Source: Selaginella moellendorffii (lineage: Eukaryota > Plantae > Lycopodiophyta). From it: 64,000 nucleotides of DNA. Under the pieces are notes generated by a model that had not been told where the DNA came from, did no database searches, and saw only the letters and a program-made list of their open reading frames with translations. The position numbers and the translations under genes were made by a program. The stretch lies in the NCBI RefSeq assembly GCF_000143415.4, contig NW_003314270.1, forward strand, positions 1,357,048 through 1,421,047, written 5' to 3'. Positions 1,102-47,728 of the stretch are shown here, piece after piece. Numbering within the stretch: position 1 is the stretch's first letter; every line of letters starts with the position of its first letter.

Positions 1102-1169
1102 AGGTGGCAAACCCTTAAGTTGTAACGAGTTTTTAAAATCAAAACTATTTTATTATCTAAATGCTCCGG

Positions 1170-2952
1170 CTAGTTGTAACAAGTAAATTGGCGCCTAATG
1201 TAGACAATCTCTTCGAGCATGTCTTGGTACGTGAATGGCCTCACGGCGGCCTTCAATCCAGTCCCTGGCTCGAAGTTCCAGTTCTTGCTCTCATCCCTGT
1301 CATCGTCGAGCTGATCGAAGTGGTGGAAATAGAGCTCTCGCGGGTAGCGTCGCAGCGCAGCATAGCTCGGGGTCACCTCCCGGTAGAAATCACGCTGCCA
1401 GGACGTGAGGTTTCTCTTCCGCAGTGGATGGGGCTTGCCACCAAAGTAGCTCTCCTTCATCCTCCTCTTCCTCTTCTTTCGCATCCCCACTTCTTCCTCG
1501 TTGCCCTGTTTAGCCGCAATTCCACTTCCTTCTTCTAGAATACGATGGTCTCCTCCTGGTTCTTCTTCCTCTTCCTGGGACTCGAAGCTTTCGAGCTGCT
1601 CTTCGTCGTATTTTCTAAGCTGTGCCAGCGCTTCACCCAGATCAAGCTCTTGATCACCAGCTTCTTCACTAGCAATATCATCGTCTTCGTCATCACGACC
1701 ATCTTCTTCTTCTTCGTCATCGCCACCTTCCTCGTCTTCGTCATTTTCATCTCCATCTTCACTACCATGATCTTGCTCGCCATCCTCGTCTTTGCCTTCC
1801 TCCTCCTCATCTTCATCATCCCACACACTCTCGTCACTCGCAAACTCAACCTGTCGCCCCGTGGCCTCGGCCTCGGCCTCCTTCCGTCGCCACTCCTTGG
1901 TAAACGGATGAAGGAACTGCACGGGCTGGCCATTCATCATATGCTCCAGCACCAGCGATCTCCTCTCTTCATCCAGCCCCACCCACGCCGCCACAATCTC
2001 CGCCTCGCTCGCACTCACCTCCACGCCCAGCCTCTCGCACAGCCGGTAGTAGAAGCTCTTCTTTCTCCTCTCTTCCACGTCCTCGCCCTCGATCCCATCC
2101 AGCTCCGTCTCGGGATTGAGAAGCTCGAACAGCCCACGCATGTAATCCTCCTGCGGCTCATATCTACGCAAGAAAACGATCAGACAATCGATCGCCAAGA
2201 ACAAGAGCTCGAGGGTGGTAGTACCTCATCTGATACTCCGGCCTCTTCACCCAGATCAAATCCGGCCGGCACCACGACACACACCTCGTCACCCCGTGCC
2301 GCGCCCGAAGATCCACCCTCTCGCCAACGTCCCACTTATCGAGCTTGGCATCGCCAGACTCCACAACGACGTGCGCCGCCAGCGTCCACGTCTTCCACGG
2401 CGGCTGCCATCGCCGCGGCTTGCTCGCCCCCCTCACGAACACGTAGAAAAAATGCATCTTGGCCGAGTCCATCATGTCGAGCTTCTTGTCGAAGATCCGG
2501 CACTGCTGGAACTTGTGCATCTCCTCCATCTCCTCGTCGTCCCGGACCGACGAGTAGAGGAACACCATGTCCTTGTCGTGCACGGACCCAAACTTGGGCT
2601 CCCCGAAGATCATCCCGCGATGGCGGTATGGCCCGTAAGCTCCATACTTGTAGTAGTCGTCGTTGTAGACGATGTCCGCCTCGGCCAGGACCTTGTCGAT
2701 CACCTCCGGCGATGGACCCAAGTCCTTGGGCTTCCTGGGACCGTCGAAGCGTCCCCCGGGACTCACCCTCTTCTTCTTCCCGGCGCTCACACTCACGTCT
2801 CTTGGAGTTGCTCTTTGGGTGATCGAGGTGAGGGAGATTGAGCTTACCCGAGTGATGGGAGGGATGGATGGAGCTGGATTGGCGCTGTGAGAGCTCCTGA
2901 GCTCTTGGCCTAGGAAGGGGCTGCCGCTTTGGAGGAGAATGCAAGAGGACAT
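1170..2952 (-). CDS. Conserved plant protein with transit-peptide-like N-terminus and Asp/Glu-rich region; 2 exons (2952-2225, 2163-1170)
   Basis: ORFs 2164..2952 and 1170..2204 join in frame through a 61-bp GT..AG intron (2224-2164) giving ...KRPEYQMR|YEPQEDY.... The N-terminus is Ser/Arg-rich. Family not identified with certainty. Confidence 0.8.
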
Positions 2953-3169
2953 TGACGAGCCCTAGAAACAGAGTATGCCAGGGGAAGGGAGAAGGAAGGC
3001 CAATTCGCAACCGATTCGACAAATTCTCGATGCTAGGGGATGGAGCTGGAAGAGATCTGGGAGCCCAACTCTCTGGATCTCGAGAAAGTTCGCGCGCGAG
3101 AGAGAATTTTACTGTAGAATCTCTCAAGAACGAGAAGAAAAGCGATTGGCATTTCTTTTTGCCCTGTGA

Positions 3170-10903: not shown

Positions 10904-12658
10904 TCTCTCTCCGGATGAGAAGAAGGCCGAACAGCAGGAAGCTCAGCAGACCCCGCAAGATGCACGCTTGCAGAAGAAAAAGGATGACGAGGGGTTTACT
11001 TTGAAGTCGATCTTGCTAGACAGCTTTAGCTATGGACCAGCGGTGTTTGAGCACGTAATTCTGGACGCTGGCCTGCAACCAAATATGAAAGTTTGTGACG
11101 CTTCCAACAGGTCGATGGTATCTGAGAAGGATCTTCACTCGCTGCTGGAAGCTATCAAAAGATTCGAAGATTGGCTGGAAAGTGTGACGACAGGTGATTT
11201 TACACCGGAAGGATATATCACGTTTCATCCAAACAAGACTGCCAAGAAGAAGAACGCAGAGTCCGCGGAAGAGAAGGTGCATATGCATCTTACGTAATGG
11301 TCTGGAGTTGATTGTGGGCCTTTTCAGATGTTCGATGAGTTTTCTCCACTCCTATTGAAGCAGAGCGCTCACCGGGAGTATGTAAAGTTCGACACTTTTG
11401 ACGCGGCGCTGGATGAATTCTTCAGTAAGATTGAGGGCCAGCGACTGGACCAGCAGTGAAAGACACAAGAGGATTCTGCCTACTCAAAGCTTGAAAAAAT
11501 TCGTGCTGATCAGGTACCGAACACTGCAATAAATTTTAAATGTTCTCAACTCGTAACTGACATGTAGAGAAGTCGAGTGGAATCTCTGAAACGTGAAGTT
11601 GATCAAGCAGTACACACAGCCGAGCTCATCGAACGATCTAGCCATTGATGCGGTTCGTGCTGCGCTTGCAAATGGCATGGATTGGAAAGACTTGGGACGC
11701 ACGATAAACGAAGAAAAGCTGGCAACCACGTAGCGGGACTCATAATCTCGACGATATGGATGACGATAATAAGGTATGGCTTGGCCAATCTTATGGTTGT
11801 TTGATATGTAATTTTGCAGGTGGAAGTTGATCTTTCTCTCTCGGCTCATGCAAACACGGGGAAGTGGTCTGAAATGAAAAAGAAGCAAGCGCTTGAGCAG
11901 GAGAAGACCGTTGCAGCACATGAAAAAGCTTTCAAAGCTGCAGAGAGAAAGACGCAGCAACAATTATCCCAGGTGCCAGACTTGCTATCGTAATAATTCT
12001 CAAGATTGAGTGTTATGCTATCTGCTTAACAAAATCCTTGAATTAGCAAATATAGAGCTTAATATTGTCATTAGAAGTATTGAGTTGCTCATTGAGATAG
12101 AGAGTGTCAGTAACAATCTTGCAGCCATAAATATCATGGAGGTAGGTCTAAATGATTGATATAAATGTAAAAGGTAAGGCATCAATATCGCTCAACAGAA
12201 TGAACAAATTGTCAAGCGCTACATGAAGAAAGGCGATTTGTACGTAGTATGAAGTTGATTTCGCGTGTTTCATCTTATGCTTTTGGACCTGCAGGTACGT
12301 TCACGCCGATTTGCATGGTGCATCAAGTACTCTAATCAAGAATCATAATCCTTCTCAACCTGTGTCGCCTTTAACAATCAACCAGGCTGGATGTTTTACA
12401 GTAATGAGCTGTTTGTTGTCCTTCACAATGCAGTTCCTTAGTTTTTTTTTTTTTTTTTTGTTGACAGGTTTGTTGCAGTCAAGGATGAGATTCCAAGATC
12501 ATTACAAGTGCTTGGTTGGTATATGATCATCAAGTGAGCAAAACGGCCCCAACAGGTGAATATCTCACTGTTGAAATTTTCATGATATGAGGAAAGAAGA
12601 ATTTTCTTCCACTGTATCCACTTGTCATGGGGTTTAGACTCTTTTTGAGGCTTGATGA
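10904..12658 (+). pseudogene. NEMF: Internal fragment of NEMF/Rqc2, inverted copy of ~20733-22527
   Basis: Matches the intact gene exon for exon ([10 protein letters not shown]...; [10 protein letters not shown]; [11 protein letters not shown]). It has a CGA>TGA stop near 11457, several deletions, and ~190 bp of unrelated sequence at ~11995-12185. Confidence 0.92.
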
Positions 12659-12679
12659 ACGAATGGAAAACTAAGATAT

Positions 12680-14368: not shown

Positions 14369-15044
14369 TGTAAGCTCTTGAATTTAGACTTCCCTAGAAG
14401 TCACCAACTTAATACTATTCAAGGACACTTAACCCTAAATATCCCACCTTTAATCAATTGGAAAAGAGGTGCACTTTTATTTATAAACCTTTTCCCTCTA
14501 TATTAAACCGTTATGAATTATTTCTTAAGTCGTTCTCTTTGGTTATTTATAATCTATCATACTTCACTACAAGTTCATGCTGTTGTAAATGAAAGCTAAG
14601 AGCTACAGCTCTCCTGAGAGCCTTGCTCTTTTAACACCTTACCCTTTGGGTCGAGCCCAGTTAAAGCAAACTAGACTTGCCAAATATCAATTAACATATA
14701 GTGTTTGAGAGCCCCGTTCTCTTGAAACCCTACCTCTTAGTTTGAGCCCAACTGAAGCAAATTAAACTTGTCAAATGTCAATCAACATGTGGTGTAATTT
14801 CTATAGCCAGCCAAGAAAATCAGATTTGAGACCTTTCTAATATCAAATATAAGTTTATGAATTTAAATTTCCCAGGAGATCACCCAACTCAATACTATTC
14901 AAACCCAAGGATACTTAACCTTAAATATCCCAAAACCCTTAATCAATTAAAAAAAGAGGTACATTTTTATTCATGGGCTCTTTTTTTTTTTATATTTGAA
15001 CCTTTATGGATCATCTTTCAAGTTATTTTCTTTGGTTGTTCACA
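14369..15044 (-). mobile_element. Cassandra-like TRIM: 676 bp, LTRs 14369-14551 and 14848-15044, TSD ATTTT
   Basis: Two ~190-bp direct repeats with outer ends TG...CA and identical ATTTT flanks (14364-14368, 15045-15049). Degenerate tRNA-iMet PBS at 14836-14845 (TCTAATATCA vs TCTGATACCA), PPT-like tract at ~14552-14566, and 5S-like sequence in both LTRs. Confidence 0.85.
14866..14919 (-). other. 5S rRNA-derived segment (A-box/C-box internal promoter region) in the TRIM LTR; second copy at 14387-14433
   Basis: TTCCCAGGAGATCACCCAACTCAATACTATTCAAACCCAAGGATACTTAAC aligns without gaps to the reverse complement of plant 5S rRNA, TTCCCAGGAGGTCACCCATCCTAGTACTACTCTCGCCCAAGCACGCTTAAC. Confidence 0.8.
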
Positions 15045-28158: not shown

Positions 28159-29834
28159 CTACCTTCTCTTGATGAGGTTAATGAGACTCAAAAGATTGAG
28201 CTATGGATTTGAAGGCTTTAAGATGGGTTTAAAAATTTTACATCACTTGTTGATGACTTACCATTTCAGCATTTACATTCTCAATATCACCTTGAAGACA
28301 ACCTTTTTTATTTTGTGGGGACAAATCCTAATGATCATTTACAATTGGTGGTGCCTTCAATATTTATTCCACAGTTTCTTTATGCTTACCATGATTCTTC
28401 TGTTCTAGGCAAGCATATAGGACATCGTTGTGTGATCGAGAAGTTGCACAAGTCTTTCTATTAGCCAGAGATACAACGTGATGTTATTCGGTATGTGCAT
28501 AATTACGTTTGGTGCCAAACTCATAATACTCCCCCTTGTGCTGCAAAAGGACAATTGGAATCAATTGCAATTTCCTATCCGTTTGAGTTTGTGGTATTTA
28601 ATCTTATGGGACCTTTTCCACAATTGACTATTGACAATGAGTATATTATTATTGCTTTTGACAATTTGACTCGTTGGGTGGAAGTTGGTGCTTTTACTAG
28701 TGCCTCTGCAACTATTGTTAGATACTTCCTCCTCAATTGAGTGGTGTTTCAACATTCTTGTCTAAAGAGGATTCTTTTGGATAATAATCCCGCATTTATG
28801 GCTGAGGCATTTCATGTGTTAGTTGTAAGCGACTAAATTTTCCATTCTACTTTAGTCACTTAACCACACCTCTGACCACTTGGAGGAGTCTCATTCACAA
28901 CCTCCATAAGTCCAATCCAGGACTTGGGACTTGCTAGCCCCGAGAATGGCATCCATGCCACTCAACCTTTGCACTTGGTCCAAGTGCTCCACGTGTCCGA
29001 TCCCATGACCGACACTCAAAGGTACCACCGACATGCCAGCCCGTTATGCTAAGGCCATGCCCAATCACCTTTGCCACACTGGTAGTCCATTACCACTTGC
29101 ATCACAGTCTTGGCTCTCCAAGACTGGGCCATCTGTCCACGAGGGGTCATCCTAGATCCACTCCTTAGCATCCTTAGGATGCCCACAGACCTGGGGAATC
29201 GCCTTCCCCAAAGTCCCTTTGTCAGTTCCTACCAAGTCCCTTTCTGCCCCTGGCCGTGTTTGCCAGCACTGCCACTGGATCGAGGCCCACAGGCCCGACC
29301 ACTAAGTCCCACGGTCCTCTGGGACTTCCTCACCACACGACTGTGTCCTTGGTCACACCCCAGGGGACTGCTCCTCTTCCTTTCCACAGTTTGGGCCTTT
29401 GGGACGACATTTCGGAACACCGTGGCCTTACGCGAGCCACCTGGGTACTCTCCCCACCTATCGCCTTTAGGTGCTCTAGCCATGGGCTTAGAGCGAGGTT
29501 CCATTGAGCCACGCCTGGTATCCAAGTAGGTAGTGCCACCCACACTTGGACTGGGAGCATTGGCCAGTCGATCTCCCGGGGGAACTAGAGCCGGCTCTTG
29601 AACACTTCACCAAGCTACCCCGCTTGTCGGTCTGTGTTCACTCTAGTCTTGGACTTCCCAGTGGGCAGCTCATCACCCAACACTGGGTCCGGCCTTCCTG
29701 GGCCAAACTGGCCTTTCCTGGCCAAACTGGCCTTTCCTGGCCAAACTGGCTCCACTGCAGTCCTCCCCCTACTATACTTCCAAACCCCCCAGGGTCTGGG
29801 AGATGAACGCTTTGGGCTTTCACCCTCTCAGGCT

Positions 29835-30390
29835 CCGGACTCGGACTCGGACTCGGACTCGGACTTGAACTCGGACTCGGACTCGGATTCGGACTCGGAT
29901 TCGGACTCGGACTTGGGCTCGGGCTCGGTCTCGGCCTCGGTCTCGGTCTCGGTCCCGATCTCGGTCTCGGTCTCGGTCCCGGTCTCGGTCCCGGTCTCGG
30001 TCTCGACTTCGGACTCCATCTCGGACTCCATCTCGGACTCCATCTCGGACTCCATCTCGGGTCCATCTCGGACTCCATCTTGGACTCCATCTCAGGTCCA
30101 TCTCGGACTCCATCTCGGACTCCATTTCGGGTCCATCTCAGGTCCACCTCGGACTCCATCTCGGACTCCATCTCGGACTCCATCTCGGGTCCATCTCAGA
30201 CTCCACTTCGGACTCCAACTCGGGTCCATCTCGGGTCCACCTCGGACTCCATCTCGGACTCCATCTCGGGTCCATCTCGGACTCCACTTCGGACTCCAAC
30301 TCGGGTCCATCTCGGGTCCACCTTGGACTCCACTTCGGACTCCATCTCGGACTCCATTTCGGACTCCAACTAGAGTACATCTCGGACACT
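29835..30390. repeat. LTR-internal satellite: (GGACTC)n - (GGTCTC)n - (GGACTCCATCTC)n; also at ~35680-36270, 40348-40835 and 46090-46730
   Basis: Directly visible hexamer and 12-mer arrays. Unit number differs between LTR copies. Confidence 0.97.
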
Positions 30391-31796
30391 CCCACGTGTC
30401 ATGTGTTGGTCCTTTTGGGTCCCTTTTTGGAGCCTCACCTTTTGCTCGCTTCGTGCTCGTTCCTCGAGCACTTCGTTGGGAGTTCCACTCCCGCTCTTGA
30501 CTTTTCAAGTCGGAGCTTTTGGTCCAAATGTGTTACGCTCGTTTGGCTCTCGCTTCAGCCACTACCATGTGGCGCCCTTCCGGCTCCACTTTGGGGCCTA
30601 GGGATTTTGTGTCTCACAACTCCACCACCCATAGACGAAGTTTGATGTCCTCATCGAACAGTAAACCCTTTCATAAAGTAACACCCACACGTGTTACCAT
30701 TTCCATCCTTGGCACCTAGCCAATCTTTGTCTATGGTTTGACATCAAAGGCTCACCATGCCTTGTCCATCCTTTAAGGAGCGTAGTCTCTCCAACTTAGA
30801 GACTTATTGGACCACATGTAATGGTTCTCTCTTTTTATTGGTTTAGTTCTCGCTAAACCTTTTAGAGACCCTTCTCTAAGTCAATCCCACTACTCCTTTT
30901 CGAGTAGTCTCAATTTCCATCGATATAACCTTTGCACTTTGGAACTTTGAATTTTGACTTCTTGGAGTCAATTTCCTAGGTGTCTCCAACACCTTGCATT
31001 GCACAGATTGTGCGACTCCACTTCCCTATCCTAGGAAGTTCATTACTTGAGGGCACCATCATCCTCTCTTCTATTTCGTGCCATCTTGGGCACTAAGTTC
31101 CATTTATCACACTTTGTGCTAGGGTTGTCCATCGCCCTATCATTTGGCTACCTTACCGTTCCCTCCCTTGGAGCTTCCACTTTCGCCAAATCGGAGCAAT
31201 TCGGAATCCCTCCTTGGAAACACATTTCCTTTCCCGCAACTTTTTAGCGTCCAACACATTAGTATTCCTCGCCTAACTTCGTCACTTGGATTCCTTCCAA
31301 GGGATTCCACGGCCCTATCTTGGCCACTCATCTTTTGCTCCTATCCGTTGATTGTTGCACCAAGCAACATCGAATCTGTACCTCCCTCCTTGAGGTATTG
31401 TTTCGGTTCCATAGCAAAGACTCTTCTTTGCCAAGTCCGGAGGATGTTCACCCCTAGTACGTCTCTTTAGCATCTTCTGCTATGGGCTCTATCCACGGCC
31501 CAACTTCGTGACCCTCCCATGGGTCTTTTATAGAGACTACTTTCCTCGGACTCACTATGCCATCGCACGGACATAGTTTATTTCCCTTAGGTGCTCTTCC
31601 CACTTGGTTATCATGACCAAGCCACACCACCTTAAACAGTTCAATTTCAACATTTTGAACCAGGAACTTCATTCCTTAGCCAACCAAGGACCTTGTCCTT
31701 TTCTGGCCATAAGATCACCTAGTGATCTCACCTTGGCACCTTAACAGAGTTGCCAAGAGGTACTTGGTTTTCTAGACCTCCAAGTTGTTGACTATA

Positions 31797-32215
31797 ACCC
31801 CGGGGGCATCCCCCACACTTGGCGGTGCACCCAAGCTAGCCCTTACGGCCAAGGGTTAATAGCAACTGAGATTAGGTGTCCCCATCTCACTCACCACGAC
31901 CTTGGTGCCACTTGCACCAAAGTGTTCAAGTTAGATATGCTGAGCTTTCACACTAAGCAATCTAACCGTGCATCACGACTCCGAGGCATCCCTCGCTTGG
32001 CGGTGTGCCCAAACCAGTCTCCCCACTGAGAGTCCATGACCACCGAAATATGAGTGTCCTCATATTCCAAACCATCACCATGCCCTAGTGATTTGGGACT
32101 CAAACCCAAGCACTAGAGGGTCGGGACTCGAACCCAACCTCCGTATATGCATCTACGGACGGCATCACACTAGATGCCTGGCGTGACTCCCCACGCCGGT
32201 GCACCAACCTATTTT
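31797..32215 (-). ncRNA. Putative conserved structured cis-RNA core of the LARD-like element (second copy 42240-42655)
   Basis: Dense perfect hairpins, two GGGTTCGAGTCCC T-arm-like stems, two repeated modules, and much higher B/D identity than the flanks. Function unproven. Confidence 0.55.
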
Positions 32216-35200
32216 TAAAGCGCGCTACAGATCACAGTTTAGGAACCTAGTTCCTCCACACTGCCAAGTCCTCTCACTTGACATGTCTGTGATCATGCAT
32301 GGACTCCTCCATGCTCGGCCCCATGGCCCACCCCTTTTGAAGTTATCACCTTCAACTAGGGTCTTTGTTCCCCCGACGTGCCAATCTCACTTGGCAAGTC
32401 CTCCGACCATTGTAACATGGTTCCTGCATAAGCGTGAAAGTCCTTGACCATCGACTTTCGTTCAAAGCCCTCTCTTTGAACACTCAGGAATTACTTCCCT
32501 AACCTTGATAACCTTGCCTCATGGCAAGCTTCAAGACCACGCTTCTGCTGCGCCACTCTGATTTCGCACGTTCCATGAACCATTTACACTTGGCCTTTCT
32601 AGGTACTACGCTACCTAGAATCGTCTTTGGGAACCTTGAAGGAACTCTGTCCTTCAGCTTGCTAAGGCCTCCCCTTTCGCAAGCTTTATAGTTGCCATAT
32701 AGTCTAACATGGACAATTCCATATTTTAGACTCTCCATGGCATCACGGTTGCTAGCAACAACATCCTCGAGCACCCTCTTGCTTCTCCACTCCCAACTTT
32801 CATAACCACTGTTGGATATGTCCTTTGATTTCTATGGTTCAGTTCCATCCCAATACTACTTGCCTTTGGCTTCACATCTTTCTTTCGGTCATTCTCCTCC
32901 AGACCAGGAGGATAGCTTTGCACTTTCTATCATGCCTTAGCAAGTATTCTTAGGGATGAACCTACCCAATAGCCCAGGGAGTGGTTCCTCAATCCGGGTA
33001 TGCTCAGCTTATAATCCCACACACTGGGATTACATTGTTGCTTATGGGCCTTTACATGCCCATCACTAGCCTTGCCAAAATTCCATTTTTGGCTTTGTCC
33101 AACTTGGGTAGACAGTCCTCTCCTGTCTCCGCAACCTTGGACATTTGGATAGCACCTTCTATCCATCATTCGCTAGGGACTTAGTCCCTTGGGCTTTATC
33201 CATTACCCTCGCGACATCAAACACCACCTTCTGGTGTTCTAGAGTGTTCGGGTGTCCCAATGATGGCTTTCTTGACAATGAGTATTTCCTTTTTTGACAT
33301 TGACTTACTATATCGCAACATAAGCAACTTATCCCCCGTAAGGGTATATCCGACTTCCCTATACTAGAAGTCTTGGGTAGCTACCTTCTACCCGTTTAAC
33401 TAGTTATTTTGCACCTCTTGCTTAGTTGCCTCATGGTTGTCAAGTCCTACAACTCATTGCTTGGTGCTTGCACACCTCCATCATTATCTGGGTCACCGCA
33501 CTCCAACTGCATGCTCTGCCGCTTAGGCTATGGCATTCCCATTTCCATTGGGATTCCTTTGGCAAGGGGTTCTCATGAACCCACCAACATAGCCTCAAGG
33601 TATCACACCTTGGCACATTTGGTGTCTCCACACCATCGGCTCCACGAGCCTACCTCTATGACATTTCCCTTTCGTGTCTAAGTCTTTGCCAAGACCAACA
33701 CCGCTCTTTCTCATGCCAACCATCCGTTAGCACTGCCCCATAGAGGTCATACACAACTTTATGTCAAAGTTGTTTTCTTCTGGGAACACCTTTCCCATAA
33801 CTTTAGCATGGCACATTTTGCCATCGATGAGATACCCTCTGTTCTCATCCTTGGATCCTATGATCCCCCCCATCCTTTGTGGGGTACAACACACCTCAGT
33901 CCAAATGCTTCCATCAGTCCTTTTAGGACCATCGCTTGACTCTACTTGAGTCATCCAGCAGTTTTGGACTTGGTTAATCCACAGACCCGTAAGGTCCTAC
34001 TTGTGAGGCACTAGCTCACTGGAATACCCTTCTTGCATTCCGGTCCTACTCAAAAGGACTATTTTCACAAGTGTTACTCTGACACTTGATTTTGTTATCT
34101 GGGGGCAACCTTTGCCCCTTAGGACTACTTGTCCATGTGATGAGAATACCAACTCATCCACTTAATACACCCCCAACTCCTTGGGTTGTTCCAGCATTTA
34201 TTAGAGGTAGCCCCGGCTACCATTTCAAGGACTTGAGTCCTCTTCCGTATTTGACCTTCCACGGTCATTACCTTTGGTCTCACATTCATGAGCACCAACC
34301 TCAACTATATGAGGATAATCTTGTGACTCCTTTATTGTTTTGGAGTCTCTATCTTTCCCGTGATCCCAACTTTAGTTGTTTACCACAACAACCTAAGCCA
34401 ATTTGCTGAGACAAATGCTCATCCGGATCACATCCTCAACTCAATGAGGAAAACCTTGCACTGTTCCCAAGATCCCAAAGTCGTTCCATTATTGGCCCTT
34501 TTCTATCCACCACCTCGTCTACAAGTTCACATATGAACTGTAATGGAGAGCCATGTCTTCCCGACTTGCTACTCCTTAAGGATAGGCCCACTCCTCGGAC
34601 CTTCCGATGCCAACACTAGTGGTGATATACTTGAGCACCAATAAAAGTTGGACTAAGGAACAGCTCCGATACCAAATTGTAAGAGACTAAATTTTCCATT
34701 CTACTTTAGTCACTTAACCACACCTCCGACCACTTGGAGGAGTCTCATTCACAACCTCCATAAGTCCAATCCAGGACTTGGGACTTGCTAGCCCCGAGAA
34801 TGGCATCCATGCCACTCAACCTTTGCACTTGGTCCAAGTGCTCCACGTGTCCGATCCCATGACCGACACTCAAAGGTACCACCGACATGCCAGCCCGTTA
34901 CGCTAAGGCCATGCCCAATCACCTTTGCCACACTGGTAGTCCATTACCACTTGCATCACAGTCTTAGCTCTCCAAGACTAGGCCATCTGTCCACGAGGGG
35001 TCATCCTAGATCCACTCCTTAGCATCCTTAGGATGCCCACAGACCTGGGGAATCGCCTTCCCCAAAGTCCCTTTGTCAGTTCCTACCAAGTCCCTTTCTG
35101 CCCCTGGCCGTGTTTGCCAGCACTGCCACTGGATCGAGGCCCACAGGCCCGACCACTAAGTCCCACGGTCCTCTGGGACTTCCTCACCACACGACTGTGT

Positions 35201-37725
35201 CCTTGGTCACACCCCAGGGGACTGCTCCTCTTCCTTTCCACAGTTTGGGCCTTTGGGACGACATTTCGGAACACCGTGGCCTTATGCGAACCACCTGGGT
35301 ACTCTCCCCACCTATCGCCTTTAGGTGCTCTAGCCATGGGCTTAGAGCGAGGTTCCATTGAGCCACGCCTGGTATCCAAGTAGGTAGTGCCACCCACACT
35401 TGGACTGGGAGCATCGGCTAGTCGATCTCCCGGGGGAACTAGAGCCGGCTCTTGAACACTTCACCAAGCTACCCCGCTTGTCGGTCTGTGTTCACTCTAG
35501 TCTTGGACTTCCCAGTGGGCAGCTCATCACCCAACACTGGGTCCGGCCTTCCTGGGCCAAACTGGCCTTTCCTGGCCAAACTGGCTCCACTGCAGTCCTC
35601 CCCCTACTATACTTTTGGAGCTCACCAAACCCCCCAGGGTCTGGGAGACGAACGCTTTGGGCTTTCACCCTCTCAGGCTCCGGACTCGGACTCGGACTTG
35701 GACTCGGACTCGAACTCGGACTCGGACTCGGATTCGGACTCGGATTCGGACTCGGACTTGGGCTCGGGCTCGGTCTCGGCCTCGGCCTCGGTCTCGGTCT
35801 CGGTCCCGATCTCGATCTCGGTCTCGGTCTCGGTCCCGGTCTCGGTCCCGGTCTCGGTCTCGACTTCGGACTCCATCTCGGACTCCATCTCGGACTCCAT
35901 CTCGGACTCCATCTCGGACTCCATCTCGGGTCCATCTCGGGTCCATCTCGGACTCCATCTCAGACTCCATCTCGGGTCCATCTCGGACTCCATCTCGGAC
36001 TCCATTTCGGGTCCATCTCAGGTCCACCTCGGACTCCATCTCGGACTCCATCTCGGACTCCATCTCGGGTCCATCTCGGACTCCACTTCGGATTCCAACT
36101 CGGGTCCATCTCGGGTCCACCTCGGACTCCATCTCGGACTCCATCTCGGGTCCATCTCGGACTCCACTTCGGACTCCAACTCGGGTCCATCTCGGGTCCA
36201 CCTCGGACTCCACTTCGGACTCCATCTCGGACTCCATTTCGGACTCTAACTAGAGTCCATCTCGGACACTCCCACATGTCATGTGTTGGTCCTTTTGGGT
36301 CCCTTTTTGGAGCCTCACCTTTTGCTCGCTTCGTGCTCGTTCCTCGAGCACTTTGTTGGGAGTTCCACTCCCGCTCTTGACTTTTCAAGTCGGAGCTTTT
36401 GGTCCAAATGTGTTACGCTCGTTTGGCTCTCGCTTCGGCCACTACCATGTGGCGCCCTTCCGGCTCCACTTTGGGGTCTAGGGATTTTGTGTCTCACATT
36501 AGTGTCTTGGTTGAGGATATGCCACACTTTCACGAGTGCTTATCATCCACAGTTAAACAATTTGGTGGAATGACATGTTCAGACATTCAAAGGGATGATC
36601 ATAAAATACGTAAACTTTCAATATTCAAATTAGGATGGTTATTTACCATTTCTTTAGTATGCATATGTCACAGGGGTGTAAAGTTCTATTGGTGCTTCAC
36701 CATATAAACTCCTATATAGTTATGATTCAATATTACCAACAGAGTTGGGTTTACCTTCATGATTGTTACGAGTGGTTGATACTAGGTCATGGGATCAATA
36801 TTTGACAAGTATTCTTCCATTTGTTTGAGTAGATTTTGCTAAACATTTAGGCCGCGTATAAATGGGACAACAATGGCACTACAACTCTTATCATCATCCA
36901 CCTACGGAGTATAAATTTGATGACTTGGTGTTAGTCTATTTTCTCTATCTTACGGTTCATCTAAAGGACTCTTTGCTCAGTGGAAAGGACCATATCAGGT
37001 GTTGTGGCAAATTAGACCACAAGCTTATAAGGTTCAATATGATGTCCAGTAGGCTAATCCTCTAGAAATTATATATGTACGACGGTTGAAACATTTGGTA
37101 CAAAGAGATCAGGAACAACTGATACCACATATAGATCCACCAATACCTTCTTTTAATATTCCTCCAGATCCCGGCCCGTCTATTAAAGAACCTAATAGTC
37201 TTCCATTATTTCGAGAGGAGGAGATGATGTGAGGTCCAAGTGTATAGTTATGATGCTATATGCTAATATTAGCGTATGTTAGGAATCCCCCAATTCTTGC
37301 CACATTCCTGACTCTCACCAAATTCTTGACCTACAGACCATATTCCTGACTCTTGAGACACTTCCCTATTCCTGACTCTTTGATTTCCTGTACGATCCTT
37401 GAGTCTCGAGCCACATTCCTAATGATGATGTGGTGCCTCCTCGACCTCAGCTATGTTTAAGTCGTCCTCAATCCAAGAGTGGTGGAGCTTCATCAACCTA
37501 TAGTATATATAGGTTACCCTTGTTCCATTTCTCCACAATCTAAATTAAGGCCTTTTCTTCGTTTCCACTAACTTTTCTCTTTGTCTTCTGCATTTTCCAG
37601 TCTTGATTTTGTTAGGGGTCTTGACAGTTTGATTCATATTGTGGTTTTTCATTTTTTGCTTTAGCTAATTTTGATTGTTTGACTGCCTTTGCCTTTTTTC
37701 CCCCTTTTTTCTTTCTTCTTTGCCG

Positions 37726-39110
37726 ATGGAATCTCCAAGCCATCTTGATTTCTTTGCCAAAGTCCTTCCAAAAATCCAGTATGAGAATACCGAGTTGAAG
37801 GCAACCCTTCTTCACATGCAGCAGGAGCTTGCTTCACTTTTAGCTCAAGGATCCAGCAAAGTTCCTGAACCAAAGGTGAGTTTTCCGGCGAAATTTTCAG
37901 GCAAGTGTTCGGAGCTTCGTAGATTCTTGAACCAGATGGAGCTAATCTTCGCACTTCAACATCGGCGGTACCCCACTCCCGAGTTTCAAATCAGTGCGAT
38001 TGGGACATTGCTCGAAGGTGCAGCTTTGTCATGGTTTTCTCCTCTCCAGGGGTTGTGGTTCCGGAGCTGATGGATCTTCAATTGTTCAAAGAGAAGCCCG
38101 AAGCATGTTTTGGTGAGATGGATCAGGTTCGGGCTGCCACCACAAAGATGAGATGTCTCTCTCAGGGGTCTCGTCCTGCCTCGATCTATGCTACAGAGTT
38201 CCAACTCCTTGCCTTGGACACACAGTGGGATGAACAGGCCCTGATTGATCAATTTCGTTTCAGCCTTAACAACGGTGTCAAGGATTTGTTGCTCACCATA
38301 GAGGATCCCACGGACTTGTCAGACACCATCAACAAAGCTGTTCAATGCAACACTTGTCTCTTTGAATGTTGTCAGGAAAGTTGCCGCATCACCGTTTTCC
38401 CGTCCCAGACTCAAGAATCCCAGCTTGAGTCTTCAGGGCATACTCCTAAACCTACTACTCTGGTCCCAATGGATATTTTTGGTACTCCCCGATTCATCAG
38501 AGGGAAGTTGAGTCCTGCTGAGAAGCAACGTCGGATATCTCATAATCTTTGCCTCTACTGTGTTGATCCTAATCACAAAGCAGCTGTGTGTCCCAAGAAG
38601 CCTCCCTGACTTCTCGAGTTCACTTTACCCCAAAGTCCACCTCTATTGTAGTTGGGAAACGACCTGTCCAAATAGAGTAGGAGCTATTTGTTTGGACTCC
38701 CCAAATAAAAATCACTTTTCTTCTTTATCAAGCTCCTCACCACCTTTCATCAAAGCCACTACCAATTCCCGCAACTTTCGCGTCCCATGTCTCCTTTCTT
38801 TCACCGGGCAATCAGAACTCAATGCTCTAGTGCTATTGGACTTGGGTGCAACTTCCTACTTCATGGACGCAGACTTTGCTGCTTGACATCATGTTCCTCT
38901 TTCTCCTACCATACAGGATCTGAGGGTTGAAGGCATCGGCAGGCATTTTGTGTATCCATTTTCTGGACTTAGGGAAATGTTTCCTGTTCGAGTACACATC
39001 AGGTCCACCGTCACCGATATCACCTTCAACATCATCAGCAGCAAGTCCTCCTCTGTGGTGCTCGGCCTTCCTTGGTTCCAACTACATCAGCCTTAGATCT
39101 GTTGGAAGGA
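37726..39110 (+). pseudogene. Gag (Ty3-type capsid + degenerate CCHC knuckle) and aspartic protease of element C, frameshifted
   Basis: PEPKVSFPAKFSG, LLEGAALSWF, LSQGSRPASIYATEF, PMDI, LSPAEKQRR..NLCLYC...HKAAVCP; protease motif LLDLGATSYFMD. Confidence 0.9.
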
Positions 39111-39349: not shown

Positions 39350-42300
39350 TGTAAGCGATTAAATTTTCCATTCTACTTTAGTCACTTAACCACACCTCTA
39401 ACCAGTTGGAAGAGTCTCATTCACAACCTCCATAAGTCCAATTCAAGACTTGGGACTTGCTAGCCCTAAGAGTGGCATCCATGCCACTCCACCCTTGCAC
39501 CTGGTCCAAGTGCTCCACGTGTCCGATCCCATGGCCGACACTCAAAAGTACCACCGACATAGCAGCCTGTTACGCTAAGGCCATGCCCAATCACCTTTGC
39601 CACACTGGTAGTCCAATACCACTTACAACATAGTCTTGTCTCTCCAAGACTGAGCCAACCATCCGTGAGTGGTCATCCCAGATCCACTCTTTAGCATCCT
39701 TAGGATGCCCACCGACAAGGGGAACAGCCTTCCCCAATATCCCTCTGTCTGTCCCCACTAAGTCCCTTTCTGCCCTTGGCCGTGTTTGCCAACACTGCCA
39801 CTGGATCAAGGCCCACATGCCTGACCACTAAGTCCCATGGTCCTCTGGGATTTCCTCACCACGTGACCATATCCTTGGCCACCACACCAAAGGACTGCTC
39901 CTTTTCCTTTCCACAGTCTGGGACTTTGGGACAATACTTCGGAACACCATGGCCTTACGCGAGCCACCTGGGTACTCTCCCCGCCTTCCGCCTTTGGGTG
40001 CTCTAGCCATGGGCTTAGAGCAAGGTTCCGTTGAGCCACGCCTAGTATCCAAGTAAGTAGTGCCACCCACACTTGGATTGGGAGCATCGGCCAGTCGATC
40101 TCCCAGGGGAACTAAAGCCGGCTCTTGAACACTTCACCAAGCTACCCCGCTTGTCGGTCCGTATCCACTCTAGTCTTGGACTTCCTAGTGGTCAGTTTAT
40201 CACCTAACACTGGGTCTGGCCTTCTTGGGCCAAACTGGCCTTTCCTGGCCAAACTGGCTCCACTGCAGTCCTCCCCCTTACTATACTTTTGGAGCTCACC
40301 AAACCCCCCAGGGTCTGGGAGACAAACGCTTTGGGCTTTCACCCTCTCAGACTCGAACTGGGACTCGAACTGGGACTCGGACTCGAATTCAGACTCGGAC
40401 TCGGACTCGGACTCGGACTTGGACTTGGGCTTGGTCTCGGCCTCGGCATCGGTCTCGGTCTCGGTCCCGGTCTCGGTCTCGGTCTTGGTCCCGGTCTCGG
40501 TCTCGGTCTCGGTCTCGACTTTGGACTCCATCTCGGGTCCATCTCGGACTCCACCTCTGGTCCATCTCGGACTCCATCTCAGGTCCATCTCGAACTCCAT
40601 CTTGGTCCATCTCAGACTCCATGTCGGGTCCATCTCGGACTCCATCTCGGTCCATCTCAGACTCCATCTCGAGTCCATCTCGGACTCCATCTCGGTCCAA
40701 TTTGGACTCCACCTTGGACTCCACCTCGGACTCCATCTCGGACTCCATCTCAGACTCTGTCTCGGACTCTGTCTCGGTCCATCTCAGACTCCATCTCGGA
40801 CTCCAACTCGGGTCCATCTCGGACTCCATCTCAGACACTTCCACGTGTCATGTGTTGGTCCTTTTGGGTCCCTTTTTGGAGCCTCGCTTATTGCTCGCTT
40901 CGTGCTTGTTCCTCGAGCACTTTGTTGGGAGTTCCACTCCCGCTCTCGACCTTTCAAGTCGAAGCTTTTAGTCCAAACGTGTTACGCTTGTTTGGCTTTT
41001 GCTTCGGCCACTACCACGTGGCACCCTTCTGGCTCCACTTTGGGGCCTAGGGATTTTGTGTCTCACAACTCCACCACCCATAGACAAAGTTCGATGTCCT
41101 CATCGAATGGTAAACCCTTTTATAAAGTAACACCCGTAGGTATTACCATTTCCATCCTTGGCGCCCAGCCAATATTTGTCTATGGTTTGACCCCAAATGC
41201 TCACCATGCCTTGTCCATCCTCTAAGGAGCATAGTCTCTCCAACATAGAGACTCACTCGACCACCTAGGGTGGTTTGCTCCCTTTTATTGGTTCAGTTCT
41301 CGCTAAACTTGTTAGAGACATCGTCTCTAACTCACTTCCACTACTCATTCTCGAGTAGTCTCAAATTCCATTGACATAACCTCTACACTTTGGAACTTTT
41401 ATTTTTGACTTCTCCGAGTCAATTTCCTAGGTGTCTCCGACACCTTACGTTGCACATGGTGCAACTCCACTTCCCTATCCTAGGAAGTTCTTTACTTGAG
41501 GGTATCATCATCCTCTCTTCAATATCATGCCACCTTTGGGCACTAGGTTCCAGTTATCATCCTTTGTGCTAGGGCTGTCCATGGCCCTATCATTTGGCTA
41601 CTTCCCTTTGGAACATCCACTTTTGCCAAATCGGAGTAGTTGGGAATCCATCCTTGGGGAAATATTGCCTTTCCCACAATTCGTTAGCACCCAACACATT
41701 AGTGTTCTCGGCCTAACTTTGCCATTTGGATTCTTTCCCATGATTCCCATGGCTCTTTTCTTAGCCATTAGCTTTTTGCCCCTATCCTTGATTGTTGCCC
41801 CCAGCAACATAGGATCGCTACCTCCATTTTTGAGGTTTCCTTTCAGTTCCATAGCAAACACTTTGTTTTGCCAAGTCCAGAGGGTGTTCACCCCTAGTAC
41901 GTCTCTTTAACATTTTCTATTGTGGGCTCTATCATGGCCCAACTTTTTGAGACCCTCCCTTGAATCTCTTATAGAGACTACTTTCCTTGGATTTATTATG
42001 CCATAGCATTGACATAGCTCATTTCCCTTAGGTGTTTTTCCCACTTGGTCACCTTGACCAAACCACACCTTTATCAATAGTTCAAATCAACACTTTGAAC
42101 TAGGAATCATATTCTTTAACCCAAAAAAATACTTTGTCCTTGTTTAGCCACAAGATCACCTAGTGATTTCATCTTGACCCCTTAATAAGTCTATCAATAG
42201 GAACTAAGTCTTCCAGACCCTTTTAAGTTGTTGACTATAACCCCGGGGGCATCCCCCACATTTGGCGGTGCGCCCAAGCCAGCCCTTCCGGCCAAGGATC

Positions 42301-45300
42301 CATAGCAATTGAGACTTGGGTGTCCCTATCTCATTCACCACGTCCTTGGTGCCCTTTGCACCAAAGTGTTCAAGTTAGATATGCCGAGCTTTCACTCTAA
42401 GCAATCTAACCGTGCATCACGACTCCGAGGCATCCCTCGCTTGGCGGTGTGCCCAAACCAGTCTCCCCACTGAGAGTCCATGACCACCGAAATATGAGTG
42501 TCCTCATATTCCAAACCATCACCACGCCCTAGTGATTTGGGACTCGAACCCAAGCACTAGAGGGTCGGGACTCGAACCCAACCTCCGTATATGCATCTAC
42601 GGACGGCATCACACTAGATGCCTGGCGTGACTCCCCACGTCGGTGCACCAACCTATTTTTAAAGCGCGCTACAGATCATAGTTTAGGAACCTAGTTCCTC
42701 CACATTGCTTAGTCCTTTCACTTGACAAGTCTGTGATCATGCATGGACTCCTCCATGCTTGGCCCCATGGCCCACCTTTTTTGAAGTTATCACCTTCAAC
42801 TAGGGTATTTGTTCCCCCGACTTGCCAATCTCACTTGGCAAGTCCTCCGACCACTGTAACATGGTTCCTGCATAAGCGTGGAAGTCCTTGACCATTGACT
42901 TTCGTTCAAAGCCCTCTCTTTGAACACTCGGGAATTACTTCCCTAACCTTGATAGCCTTGCCTCATGGCAAGCTTCAAGACCCCGCTTCTACTGTGCCAC
43001 TCTGATTTTGCGCGTTCCATGAACCATTTACACTTGGCCTTTCTAAGTACTAAGCTACCTAGAATCGTCTTTAGGAACTTTTGAAGGAACTCTGTCCCTT
43101 AGCTTGCTAAGGCCTCCCTTTACACAAGCTTTCTAGTTGCCATATAGTCTAACATGGACGACTCTTCATAGCATCACGGTTGCTAGCAACAATACCCTCG
43201 AGCCCCCACTTGATTCTCCACTCCCAGCTAGCATAACCAAACTTGGTTATGCCCTTCGATTCTTATGGTTCGGTTCTATCCCCTTACTACTTGCTTTTTG
43301 GCTTCACAACCTTCCTTCGGTTATTCGCCTCCAAACTAAGAGGATAGCTTTGCACTTTCTACCATGCCTTAGCAAGTATTCTTGGGGATGAACCTACCCA
43401 ACAGCCTAAGGAGTGGTTCCTCAATCCATGCATGCTCACCTTATAATCTCACACATCGGGATTAACGTTGTTGCTTATGGGCCCTTACATGCCCATCACT
43501 AGCTTTGCCAAAATTTCATTTTTGGCTTTGTCCAATTTGGGTAGATAGTCTTCTCCTATCTCCGCAACCTTGGACATTTGGATAGCACCTTCTATCCATC
43601 ATTTGCGAGGAACTTAGTCCCTTGGGCCTTATCTATTGCCCTTGCAACACTAAACACCACCTCCTGGTGTTCCAAAGTGTTTGGGTGTCCCAATGATAGT
43701 CTCCTTGACAATGAGCATTTCCTTTTATGACATTGACTCACTATATCGCAACATAAACAATTTATCCCTCGTAAGGGTATATCTAACTTCTTTATGCCAT
43801 TTAGAAGTTTTGGGTAGCTACCTTTTACCCATTTAACGAATTATCTTTACACCTCTTGCTTAATTGCCCTATAGTTGTCAAGTTCTACAACTCATTGCTT
43901 AGTGCTTCCATACCTTCATCATTATCTGGGTCACCACACTCTAACCGCATGCCTTCCAGCTTAGGCCATGCCATTCCCACTTCTATTGGGATTCTCTTGG
44001 CAAGGGGTTCTTATAAACCCACCATCATAACCTCAAGGGATCACACCTTGGCACATTTGGTGTCTCCATACCATCGGCTCCACGAGCTTACCTCTGTGAC
44101 ACTTCTTACTTGTGTCTAGGTCTTTGCCAAGTCTAAAGTAGTCATTTTTCATGCCAACTATCAATTAGCACTACACCATAGTGCACACACAACTCTATGC
44201 CAAAGTTGCTTTCTTTTTAGGGAACACCTTTCCCACAACTTTAGCATGGCACATTCTGCTATCGATGAGATACCCTCTGTTCTCATCCTTAGATCCTATA
44301 ATCCCCCCCATCCTTCGTGGGGTACAACACACCTCAGTCCAAATGCTTCTATCAGTCCTTTAGGACCATTCCTTGACTCTACTTGAGTCATCCAGCAGTT
44401 TTGGATTTGGTTAATCCACGGACCCATAAGGTCCTACTTGTCAGGCACCAGCTCATTGGAATACAACTTCTTGCATTCATGTCCCACTCACAAGGACTAT
44501 TTTCACAAGTGTTACTCTGACATTTGATTTTGTTCTCTGGGGCAACCTTTGCCCCTTAGGACTACTTGTCCATGTGATGAGAATTCCAACTCATCTCTAA
44601 GTACACCCCCCAACTCTTTGGGTTGTTCCAGCATTTATTAGAGGTAGCCCCGGCTACTATTTCAAGGACTGGTGTCCTCTTTTGTATTTGACCTCCCACG
44701 GTCAACAATTCTGGTCTCAAATTTATGAGTACTAGCCTCAACCATATAAAGGTAATCTTGTGACTCCTTTATTGTTTTGGAGTCTGCATCTTTCCCGTGA
44801 TCCCAACTATAGTTGTTTACCACAACTACATTAGCTCGTTTGCTAAGTCAAACGCTTATTTGGATCACATCCTCAACTTTCTAAGGAAACTTTTATATTG
44901 TTCCCAAGATCCCAAAGTCATTCCCTTACTGGCCCCTTTTCTATTCACCACATCACGCCCACGCATGAACTTGAGTGGAGAGCCGTGTCCTCTCGACATG
45001 CTACTCCTCAAGGATAGGCCCACTCCTAGGACCTTCCAATGCCAATGTCAATGGTGATATACTTGAACACCAATAAAAGTCGGACTAAGGAACAGCTCCG
45101 ATACCAAGTTGTAATCGATTAAATTTTCCATTCTACTTTAGTCACTTAACCACACCTCTGACCACTTAGAGGAGTCTCATTCACAACCTCCATAAGTCTA
45201 ATTCAGGACTTGGGACTTGCTAGCCCCAAGAGTGGCATCCATGCCATTCCACCCTTGCACCTGGTCCAAGTGCTCTACATGTCCGATCCCATGGCCGACA

Positions 45301-46238
45301 CTCAAAGGTACCACCAACATAGCAGCCTGTTATGCTAAGGCCATGCCCAATCACCTTTGCCACACTGGTAGTCCAATACCACTTGCAACACAGTCTTGTC
45401 TCTCCAAGACTGAGCCAACCATCCGTGAGTGGTCATCCCAGATCCACTCCTTAGCATCCTTAGGATGCCCACCGACAAGGGGAATAGCCTTCCCCAATAT
45501 CCCTCTGTCTGTCCCCACTAAGTCCCTTTCTGCCCTTGGCCGTGTTTGCCAACACTGCCACTGGACCGAGGCCCACAGGCCTAACCACTAAGTCCCATGG
45601 TCCTCTGGGACTTCCTCACCACATGACCGTATCCTTGGCCACCACACCAAAGGACTGCTCCTTTTCCTTTCCACAGTCTAGGACTTTGGGACAATACTTC
45701 GGAACACCGTGGCCTTACGCGAGCCATCTGGGTATTCTCCCCGCCTTCCGCCTTTGGGTGCTCTAGCCATGGGCTTAGAGCGAGGTTCCGTTGAGCCATG
45801 CCTGGTATCCAAGTAGGTAGTGCCACCCACACTTGGACTGGGAGCATTGGCCAGTCGATCTCCCGGGGGAACTAGAGCCGGCTCTTGAACACTTCACCAA
45901 GCTACCCCGTTTGTCGATCCATATTCACTCTAGTCTTGGACTTCCTAGTGGTCAGTTCATCACCCAACACTAGGTCTGGCCTTCCTGGGCCAAACTGGCT
46001 TCACTGCAGTCCTCCCCCTTACTATACTTTTGGAGCTCACCAAACCCTCCAGGGTCTGGGAGACGAACGCTTTGGGCTTTCACCCTCTCAGACTTGAACT
46101 CGGACTCGGACTCGGACTCGGACTCGGACTCGAATTCGGACTCGGACTCGGACTTGGACTTGGACTTGGACTTGGGCTTGGTCTCGGCCTCAGCCTTGGT
46201 CTCGGTCTCGGTCCCGGTCTCGGTCTCGATCTTGGTCC

Positions 46239-46270
<32 letters not shown>

Positions 46271-46958
46271 ACTTCGGACTCCATCTCGGGTCTATCTCGG
46301 ACTCCACCTCTGGTCCATCTCGGACTCCATCTTGGGTCCATCTCGGTCCATCCCAGACTCCATCTCGGGTCCATCTCGGACTCCATCTCGGTCCATCTCG
46401 GACTCCATCTCGGGTCCATCTCGGACTCCATCTCGGTCCATCTCGGACTCCATCTCGGGTCCATCTCGGTCCAATTGGGACTCCATCTCGGACTCCACCT
46501 CGGACTCCATCTCGGACTCCATCTCGGACTCCGTCTCGGTCTATCTCGGACTCCATCTCGGGTCTATCTCAGACTCCATCTCGGTCCAACTTGGACTCCA
46601 TCTCGGACTCCACCTCGGACTCCATCTTGGACTCCATCTCGGAGTCCACCTCGGACTCCATCTCGGACTCCGTCTCGGACTCCATCTCGGACTCCAACTC
46701 GGGTCCATCTTAAACTCCATCTCGGACACTTCCACGTATCATGTGTTGGTCCTTTTGGGTCCCTTTTTGGAGCCTCGCTTATTACTCGCTTCGTGCTTGT
46801 TCCTCAAGCACTTTGTTGGGAGTTCCATTCCCGCTCTCGACCTTTCAAGTCGGAGCTTTTAGTCCAAACGTGTTACGCTCGTTTGGCTTTCGCTTCGGCC
46901 ACTACCACGTGGCACCCTTCCGGCTCCACTTTGGGGCCTAAGGATTTTGTGTCTCACA
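39350..46958 (-). mobile_element. Full-length non-autonomous LTR element D (same family as B), 7609 bp; LTRs 39350-41067 and 45110-46958; TSD GATAT
   Basis: GATAT at 39345-39349 and 46959-46963. Same PBS (GCTCCGATACCA on +) and PPT as B. Interior collinear with B. Confidence 0.95.
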
Positions 46959-47728
46959 GATATGGCACCTCCTCGACCTCAGTTATATTTAGGTCGTTTT
47001 AGATCCAAGAGTGGTGGAGCTTCATCAACCTATAGTATATATAAGTTAGCCTTGTTCCATTTCTCCACAATTTGAATTAACACCAGTTAAAGGCCTCTTC
47101 TTTATTTCCACTAGCTTTTCTCTTTATCTTCTGCATTTTCCAGTCTTGATTTTGTTGGGGGTCTTGACAGCGTAGTGGGATTTTGGTAGCTATTAGATTG
47201 GTTTTAATTCAGACCACTCACTCCTATATATAAATTAGAATTTTTGGGCTAATTGATATGCATATTTTTTGTATTCCCTTTTATATTCCATGCACTCACA
47301 TATAAAAATAAGAGAAATCTAGATAATATAAAAAGCTAAATCTTTTAAAAAAGCATAAATCTAAACATTCTTTAGGGGCAATTAAAGCTACTACTAATTG
47401 AAATACAATAATATACCTATAAAAACAAGTGGTCTCTATTGAAATTAATTTGATAGCTATCAAAATCCCACTACACTAATAATAATATATAATATTGTAA
47501 TTGTACACTTCTAAATTCATTAATTTTTTCAATGTTTTTTATTGTTTTAAATTGATGAAACATTGAATAGTCTAAATCTCTAAATATATATCCCTTGAGA
47601 TATCAAAGACATTTTAGTGTAACTATATCATATATGTCTTTGATTAGTTGAAGTGTAATAGAGATATTCTTTGTATTTATAAATATTTTTTGGATTATTT
47701 TTTTATTATTAATTTGATCAAAAGTTTT

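Follow-up and report, generated by a model that had tools for sequence, protein, structure and literature searches.

A conserved structured core in a protein-less LTR retrotransposon of Selaginella moellendorffii, tentatively read as a cis-acting RNA domain

The window analyzed here is a stretch of 64,000 nucleotides (64 kb) from the lycophyte Selaginella moellendorffii (RefSeq assembly GCF_000143415.4, contig NW_003314270.1, positions 1,357,048 to 1,421,047 of the forward strand), numbered below from its first letter. Self-comparison of the window revealed two complete long terminal repeat (LTR) elements, E1 and E2 (the copies B and D of the original prediction, which was made from the sequence alone), arranged in tandem and in the same orientation on the minus strand, on which all of their features are given. 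Both are non-autonomous elements of the large retrotransposon derivative (LARD) type, and their protein-less interiors share a conserved, branched core (42659-42346 in E2). The original prediction had proposed a selected cis-acting RNA domain at this site, and the analysis supports the proposal in part, the support being real but limited. A selected cis-acting RNA domain is the explanation that we prefer, tentatively and at a little less than an even chance. It is preferred because duplicated modules show compensatory change, because their fold, with its G-U pairs, is restricted to the sense strand, because the core has the lowest divergence of the element, and because genomic read depth within the interior peaks there.

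The duplicated modules are the best evidence for retention of a sense-strand RNA fold, based on two old paralogues and thus effectively on two lineages. Module 1 (42407-42525; covariance model R1, 125 bits, and consensus fold) consists of a GACA-loop hairpin followed by a three-way junction with an invariant TTGGGCRCACCGCCAA hairpin. Module 2 (42225-42347) adopts the module 1 fold with other stem sequences and diverges between E1 and E2 at the ordinary rate (substitutions 11.4%); two linker hairpins (42348-42406) lie between the modules. Two modules sharing one grammar had been described from the sequence, and the common fold bears this out, whereas the size of ~200 nt then given for them does not hold, since each module measures ~120 nt and the two are spaced by 179 nt. 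Each element contains the invariant module motif exactly twice, and the motif is absent from the remainder of the 64 kb (chance expectation 0).

Modules 1 and 2 and their E1 counterparts align into a single consensus fold, comprising the GACA-loop hairpin, the three-way junction and a closing 14-bp helix. Among its 33 pairs, 97.7% of the cells are paired, and 9 pairs are altered on both sides yet still pair. In the control, in which the 3' partners were slid by 1-3 columns, only 0-2 pairs were changed on both sides and 34-46% of the cells paired. The consensus energy of -30.8 was never reached in 300 column shuffles (mean -12.7, sd 3.0), and 9 compensatory pairs were reached in 2 of the 300. 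G-U pairs account for 22 of the 132 pair cells (17%), and the mirrored antisense fold is only 83% paired; the module fold is thus specific to sense RNA, because the G-U pairs fail on the antisense strand. The minimum free energies (MFEs) of single modules range from -46 to -50 kcal/mol on the sense strand versus -27 to -37 kcal/mol on the antisense strand. Searches with covariance model R1, also with filters off, detected no additional modules in the window, and when the whole element was scanned, with no shuffle control, for duplex partners of the invariant motifs, none could be called above chance. Outside the window, the module motif matched once in bacterial and archaeal genomes and never in viral contigs; the single match is read as chance, as ~2 are expected by our own estimate.

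The second line of evidence is the distribution of divergence along the element. In steps of 100 nt, E1 and E2 are 71-96% identical over most of their length, 93-99% identical from ~43050 to 42350, and 98-99% identical at 42647-42447. The low-divergence zone thus delimited (42356-43050) is lowest at 42700-42397, with 4 differences in ~300 nt. Substitutions amount to 2.2% (7/314) in the core, 6.3% just upstream of it (43149-42660), 12.5% and 17.1% in the remaining interior, and 9-10% between the LTRs of the two elements. The flanking interior is therefore indeed more diverged than the core (11-17% versus 2.2%), as had been noted by eye. The accompanying estimate of about 4 differences in ~270 nt proved close, the count being 5 of 271 in 42655-42385; the remark that several of the changes fall in loops was not borne out, as one of the five lies in a loop, two keep a pair and two break one. 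The LTR pair within each element differs by 1.7% in E1 and by 5.0% in E2 (in the latter, substitutions outside a tandem array), and the decay since insertion that these pairs record predicts ~3.35% between E1 and E2. The core, at 2.2%, is not below this value, and gene conversion is therefore not needed to explain its identity. By the same reckoning, the source elements of the two copies appear practically identical in the core only, and 6-14% apart elsewhere. The low-divergence zone ends fairly abruptly on its right, at ~42356, and grades out over ~400 nt on its left. We infer that selection, rather than recombination, made the conservation peak.

Reads from the organism at large point in the same direction. 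In a DNA run from the same species, 124,515 contigs aligned to the element (40850-46080, at least 80% likeness), which makes the family an enormous one. In this run, word depth reached 230k at 42425-42599, versus 29-120k in every other interior bin. The peak is on a level with the LTR bins, in keeping with a core that would still be recognizable across diverged subfamilies.

The part of the core that lies closest to the 5' LTR is a five-way junction (42522-42630), identified by MFE folding and shuffles and with the same branches in E1. The motifs listed in the original prediction were all found on the minus strand in both copies, although the second copy of the core occupies 31782-32186 rather than 31797-32215. 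The predicted closing stem around four consecutive hairpins folds exactly as drawn in E2, where 42630-42624 pair with 42528-42522. The 113-nt piece 42632-42520 has an MFE of -54.5 kcal/mol (31% of the ensemble), and none of 200 shuffles was as good (mean -35.0, z-score -5.3); over the whole 416-nt stretch the z-score is -5.9 in E2 and -8.1 in the E1 copy (dinucleotide shuffles). Hairpin 1 (42605-42622) has a 6-bp stem and a 6-nt loop, while hairpin 2 (42584-42603) has a 6-bp stem and an 8-nt loop containing the palindrome ATGCAT, the sole 6-nt palindromic loop among the 116 hairpin loops of the E2 interior. Hairpin 3 (42563-42583) carries the loop TTCGAGT on a 7-bp stem and includes the T-loop/B-box sequence GGTTCGAGTCC; in hairpin 4 (42529-42560), a second T-arm-like hairpin is enclosed by a 6-bp outer stem. 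The likeness of these last two to a tRNA T-arm or B box, recognized from the outset, is perfect at the level of the T-loop/B-box. Hairpins 3 and 4 are paralogues that arose by a 28-nt tandem duplication, GGGTTCGAGTCCC, part of the duplicated unit, being present twice per element, and loops of the T-loop type are confined to them within the interior. The closing stem as drawn is disrupted in E1 by a CpG transition, its place being taken by a shifted 5-bp helix that closes the junction, and the second T-loop of E1 is altered by another CpG transition.

The closing strand CACGCC (42624-42629) has two possible GGCGTGG partners, at 42635-42641 and 42522-42528 (E1 counterparts 32179-32185 and 32078-32084). 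The upstream partner is spoiled in E2 and the downstream one in E1. This pattern represents either reciprocal decay or the trace of a source element with two helices that excluded each other.

Several observations weigh against a selected domain. On the antisense strand the junction folds just as well (z-score -6.3), so that the junction alone is uninformative as to RNA versus DNA, and strand specificity is confined to the modules. Covariation within the junction is zero, because E1 and E2 are nearly invariant there; the compensatory pairs are those between modules 1 and 2. With respect to the conserved interior RNA structure expected of a LARD, then, the modules are supported, the interior as a whole is supported weakly, and the junction offers no variation between the two copies. 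Across the interior, double changes that leave a pair intact are about twice as numerous as expected, 11 versus 4.7 (7 of 1000 permutations) and 13 versus 6.1 (8 of 1000), but this point in favor is matched by an equal compensatory excess on the antisense strand. Single changes in stems break pairs about as frequently as they preserve them (105 versus 89 and 115 versus 88), as expected of decaying copies, which is of no help to a reading by selection. As for hairpin 2, its palindromic loop counts as a lead rather than a finding and does not exceed chance, ~2 such loops being expected by our own rough estimate. The depth peak could derive from a piece common to another repeat. Expression appears very low, with 15 reads among the 9.2 million of one raw RNA run; the first mate of these reads is almost always on the plus strand, as with sense transcripts if the library is stranded. 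The identity peak could come from a conversion tract or a recombinant origin, possible sources because just two copies were compared, 10 kb apart and in the same orientation. Finally, nothing ties the domain to packaging any more than to export, stability, priming or no role at all.

Some of these points are shared by the main rival, a mutational origin combined with local homogenization, which we consider rather unlikely. According to this explanation, the hairpins would be a by-product of snap-back or template-switch errors of reverse transcription, the identity peak would be a gene-conversion tract or a patch recombined from co-packaged RNA, and the core would have no function. A span-limited fold of the 4-kb interior indeed chains 116-127 hairpin loops, and the z-scores of 200-nt windows along it are negative in all cases; those of the core are -3.6 and -4.3, while the region 43655-43256 scores -4.7 and -5.0, and the core is therefore not uniquely structured. 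The tandem position of the copies, the fairly sharp right edge of the low-divergence zone, the breakage of stems by single changes and the equal compensatory excess on the two strands would likewise be accommodated. On the other hand, conversion is unnecessary at the observed divergence of the core, the left edge of the zone is graded, the old modules have held one fold through nine compensatory pairs and G-U pairs that serve the sense strand only, and the core bin has the highest interior depth across the whole family in genomic DNA.

Under the preferred reading of a selected cis-acting domain, the element would be transcribed from its minus strand and the core would lie in its genomic RNA, while the proteins of a helper element would package, reverse-transcribe and integrate this protein-less RNA. 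Selection on the sense-RNA fold, that is, on the five-way junction with its two T-loop hairpins, the two linker hairpins and the two three-way-junction modules, would preserve the core in lineages that still transpose, and each copy would decay neutrally after insertion. By analogy with known retroelement signals, a packaging or dimerization role seems the most likely. The Gag protein of the helper may recognize the core, or two RNAs may pair through it; each of the duplicated modules would then serve as one of two similar binding sites, and the palindrome in the loop of hairpin 2 would be a candidate kissing loop.

The T-arm-like hairpins invite another explanation, namely that the element captured a tRNA gene, or a short interspersed element or terminal-repeat retrotransposon in miniature (TRIM) derived from tRNA, of which the junction is what remains, and that its B boxes still bind TFIIIC and act as an internal RNA polymerase III (Pol III) promoter or chromatin boundary. 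We judge this to be improbable. It draws on the two perfect B boxes, which sit 28 nt apart on hairpins with 7-nt T-loops, and on the presence in the same species of TRIMs with a tRNA promoter (Helenus-1_SMo), which have the same primer binding site (PMC10886601). The B box GGTTCGANTCC has two exact matches on the sense strand, starting at 42578 and 42550. However, an A box of the form TRGCNNAGTGG ~30-60 nt upstream of the B box is absent, also with a relaxed pattern, and the best candidate, with two mismatches, sits 132 nt upstream of the first B box. A terminator of at least four T is lacking in E1 within ~900 nt and occurs in E2 only at 42129, where it is not conserved. A complete type-2 Pol III promoter, one of the identities first suggested, was rejected on these grounds, as the B boxes are present and both an A box at working distance and a shared terminator are missing.

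The suggestion of a tRNA mimic fared no better. ARAGORN found no tRNA genes in the window and, at default settings, none in three constructs from which either T-arm or one 28-nt unit had been deleted; with relaxed settings, its calls were inconsistent. Rfam 15 gave no match at gathering scores over the whole 64 kb, in agreement with the view that the structure belongs to no named family, and at E≤10 over 42200-42900 it returned only noise, with no tRNA, hammerhead or other ribozyme. The best structured match was RF00233, the Tymovirus tRNA-like element, whose 12.4 bits (E 7.6) fall short of the gathering score of 40. A tRNA or a recognizable tRNA relic was accordingly rejected, as was a known ribozyme or retrozyme; the ribozyme-like motif of the original prediction is not supported, a new class of ribozyme being outside the reach of Rfam. 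The arms in the positions of the D and anticodon arms, with stems of 6 bp and loops of 6 and 8 nt, are also unlike tRNA, and the tRNA-like part of Helenus-1_SMo differs in sequence and sits in the LTR. Membership of the Helenus/TRIMp3 group, whose elements are shorter than ~1.3 kb and carry small-RNA-derived sequence in the LTR, was rejected for an element of 7.6 kb with its motif in the interior, the primer binding site alone being a match.

The double T-arm pattern was also sought in JGI metagenomes. The 13 loci found there were set aside as unrelated duplications of T-arm sequence with no BLAST similarity to the element. Their two T-arm cores lie 13-17 nt apart, and two of the loci (L003 and L009 among L001-L013) are longer tandem arrays. 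Those with a visible upstream tRNA body look like duplicated tRNA 3' ends at integration sites.

Less probable still is that the domain serves the host or silencing, as a source of small RNAs or as a non-coding RNA adopted by the host. High abundance combined with near silence in RNA-seq is what a silenced target would show, and the core of the family is conserved. The stems, of 4-14 bp, are nevertheless below the length of a Dicer substrate, and conservation seen across a multi-copy family is more readily ascribed to the lineage of the element itself. The least likely alternative, a decayed gag/pol coding relic, which had been named beforehand as an outcome that would overturn the prediction and which recalls the thought that LARDs descend from autonomous elements, is given very little credence, as the open reading frame (ORF) pieces inside 42200-42900 do not exceed 54 aa, searches of Pfam and of proteins are blank, and the conserved features are helices with compensatory change.

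E2 (39350-46958) is flanked by the target site duplication (TSD) ATATC and E1 (28824-36498) by ACTAA, the boundaries of E2 having been established by self-BLAST and boundary reading. The LTRs, all with TG..CA ends, measure 1.7-1.85 kb in elements of 7.6 kb spaced by 10 kb; the 5' and 3' LTRs of E2 lie at 45110-46958 and 39350-41067, and those of E1 at 34678-36498 and 28824-30618. The primer binding site (PBS) of E2, TGGTATCGGAGC (45095-45106), begins 3 nt past the 5' LTR, in an arrangement repeated in E1. It is of the initiator-tRNA-Met type, in the spelling of Selaginella elements, and is identical to the 12 letters with which the internal part of Helenus-1_SMo opens; Helenus-1_SMo is a TRIM from S. 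moellendorffii (PMC10886601, supplement). A polypurine tract (PPT) abuts the 3' LTR of E2 (41068-41079), and a purine-rich tract is likewise present in E1. The interior extends over 4.04 kb, its longest ORF in the two copies being 127 aa, and the conserved core sits 2.45-2.87 kb past the PBS of E2. Pfam searches with 16 ORF pieces (10 around the core and 6 longer ones of the interior) listed a single, chance-level line (E 0.27), protein searches yielded no homologues for ORFs spanning the core, for ORFs of the 3' interior or for those of the LTR, and the interior showed no similarity to the rest of the window. E1 and E2 are thus LARD-type elements, because both combine TG..CA LTRs, TSD, PBS and PPT with a long interior without gag/pol capacity, whose ORFs have no meaningful Pfam match or homologue.

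Each LTR holds a tandem array of several hundred bases (46087-46727, 40346-40836, 35672-36267 and 29826-30387), with a unit of ~12 nt as estimated from BLAST offsets; the arrays yield long spurious ORFs, rich in SD, GL and RP, on both strands. Between the two LARD copies, a broken gag relic of the Ty3/gypsy type lies on the plus strand (37675-38609; Retrotrans_gag E 8e-4, a weak Ty3_capsid match and a CCHC knuckle). The segments 37427-37627 and 46959-47170 are 86% alike, and E1 and E2 may therefore both have inserted into copies of one older repeat. Other repeat families in the window form large inverted pairs (222-3621 versus 9729-6362, 96%; 10906-12659 versus 22525-20733, 92-95%). A Cassandra-like TRIM, logged during the first reading of the window at 14369-15044, has no detectable similarity to the LARD interior and lacks the LARD PBS sequence.

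A shorter relative of the element was encountered among the reads. In one run (X17), depth was zero at 42950-45049 and ~50 elsewhere, and the run is therefore not plain genomic DNA. A 2,580-nt contig from it joins 45107, the base before the PBS, to 42826 and runs on to 41324; it represents a shorter relative that retains the core ~200 nt behind the LTR. In a second, independent contig, from DNA, 42820 is joined to the first base of the 3' LTR (41067). Both breakpoints fall inside the 3' arm of one perfect 8-bp hairpin (42842-42821), and the joint of 45107 to 42826 creates a PBS-like TGGCAAGTCGG start. No LTR relic was found upstream of the PBS-like site at 42826-42856, where the best local alignment scored 27 (shuffle mean 22.6, maximum 32). 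The 7.6-kb element may have arisen when two shorter interiors were fused; alternatively, template switching may be concentrated at this hairpin.

The packaging and dimerization domains of retroviruses and LTR elements, such as Psi and the kissing-loop dimerization initiation site (DIS) of HIV-1, MLV and Ty1, are normally located in the leader, just past the PBS. The Selaginella core resembles them as a short, conserved cluster of hairpins with a purine-flanked palindromic loop, repeated hairpins with conserved tetraloops, and conservation above that of its flanks. In contrast, it is placed 2.45 kb behind the PBS, and ~200 nt behind the LTR in one contig variant only. With the viral tRNA-like structures (RF00233; Tymovirus, Pomovirus and Furovirus) it shares a branched RNA with a T-arm-like hairpin in a genome that is not a tRNA; unlike them, it is internal rather than at the 3' end, and has neither an acceptor pseudoknot nor a CCA end.

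Among non-autonomous LTR elements, the closest in kind are the LARDs, large retrotransposon derivatives such as Sukkula of barley in the account of Kalendar et al. (2004) relayed in PMC7215508. The likeness extends to LTRs, PBS, PPT, a 5-bp TSD, a multi-kilobase interior without gag/pol and abundance. The Selaginella element differs in coming from a lycophyte, in lacking detectable sequence relation, and in an interior that chains more than 100 short hairpins. Helenus-1_SMo, of the TRIMp3 group with Cassandra and Ajax (Kojima 2024, PMC10886601), is likewise a non-autonomous LTR element, from the same species, with an identical PBS, a 5-bp TSD and a tRNA-gene-like B-box sequence; it is only 325 bp long, however, and its LTR contains a tRNA-like sequence that is nearly complete and includes both A and B boxes, whereas the 7.6-kb LARD has T-arm-like hairpins only, in the interior and without an A box, and is unrelated beyond the PBS. 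Retrozymes, the hammerhead-bearing non-autonomous LTR elements (PMC5680766), are also non-coding plant LTR retroelements resting on a structured RNA motif; the LARD is ten times larger and has no ribozyme match in Rfam.

The element can be classed as a new family among the LARDs, a known class said to have conserved RNA structure (PMC7215508), and the limits of its core are unusually clear; we found no published LARD description that maps a delimited core of ~300-700 nt with T-loop hairpins and a duplicated module. For the annotation of tRNA genes and Pol III promoters in the Selaginella genome, the T-arm/B-box look-alikes are a caution against over-reading. The abundance of the family, together with a delimited core of ~300-700 nt in which four junction hairpins, two paralogous modules and invariant loop motifs can be told apart, makes this architecture testable. 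A further possibility, which we regard as a long shot, is a new kind of retroelement signal, in which a double T-loop mimic of the tRNA elbow, carried by a junction that switches between two closing helices, would be coupled to the modules. The gene-less element would thereby capture a host factor that binds tRNA, or the Gag or reverse transcriptase of a helper, and would outcompete that helper. If true, this would explain how a protein-less element rose to be among the most abundant repeats of Selaginella. The core bears on the question of how LTR retrotransposons without genes win packaging and copying by foreign proteins.

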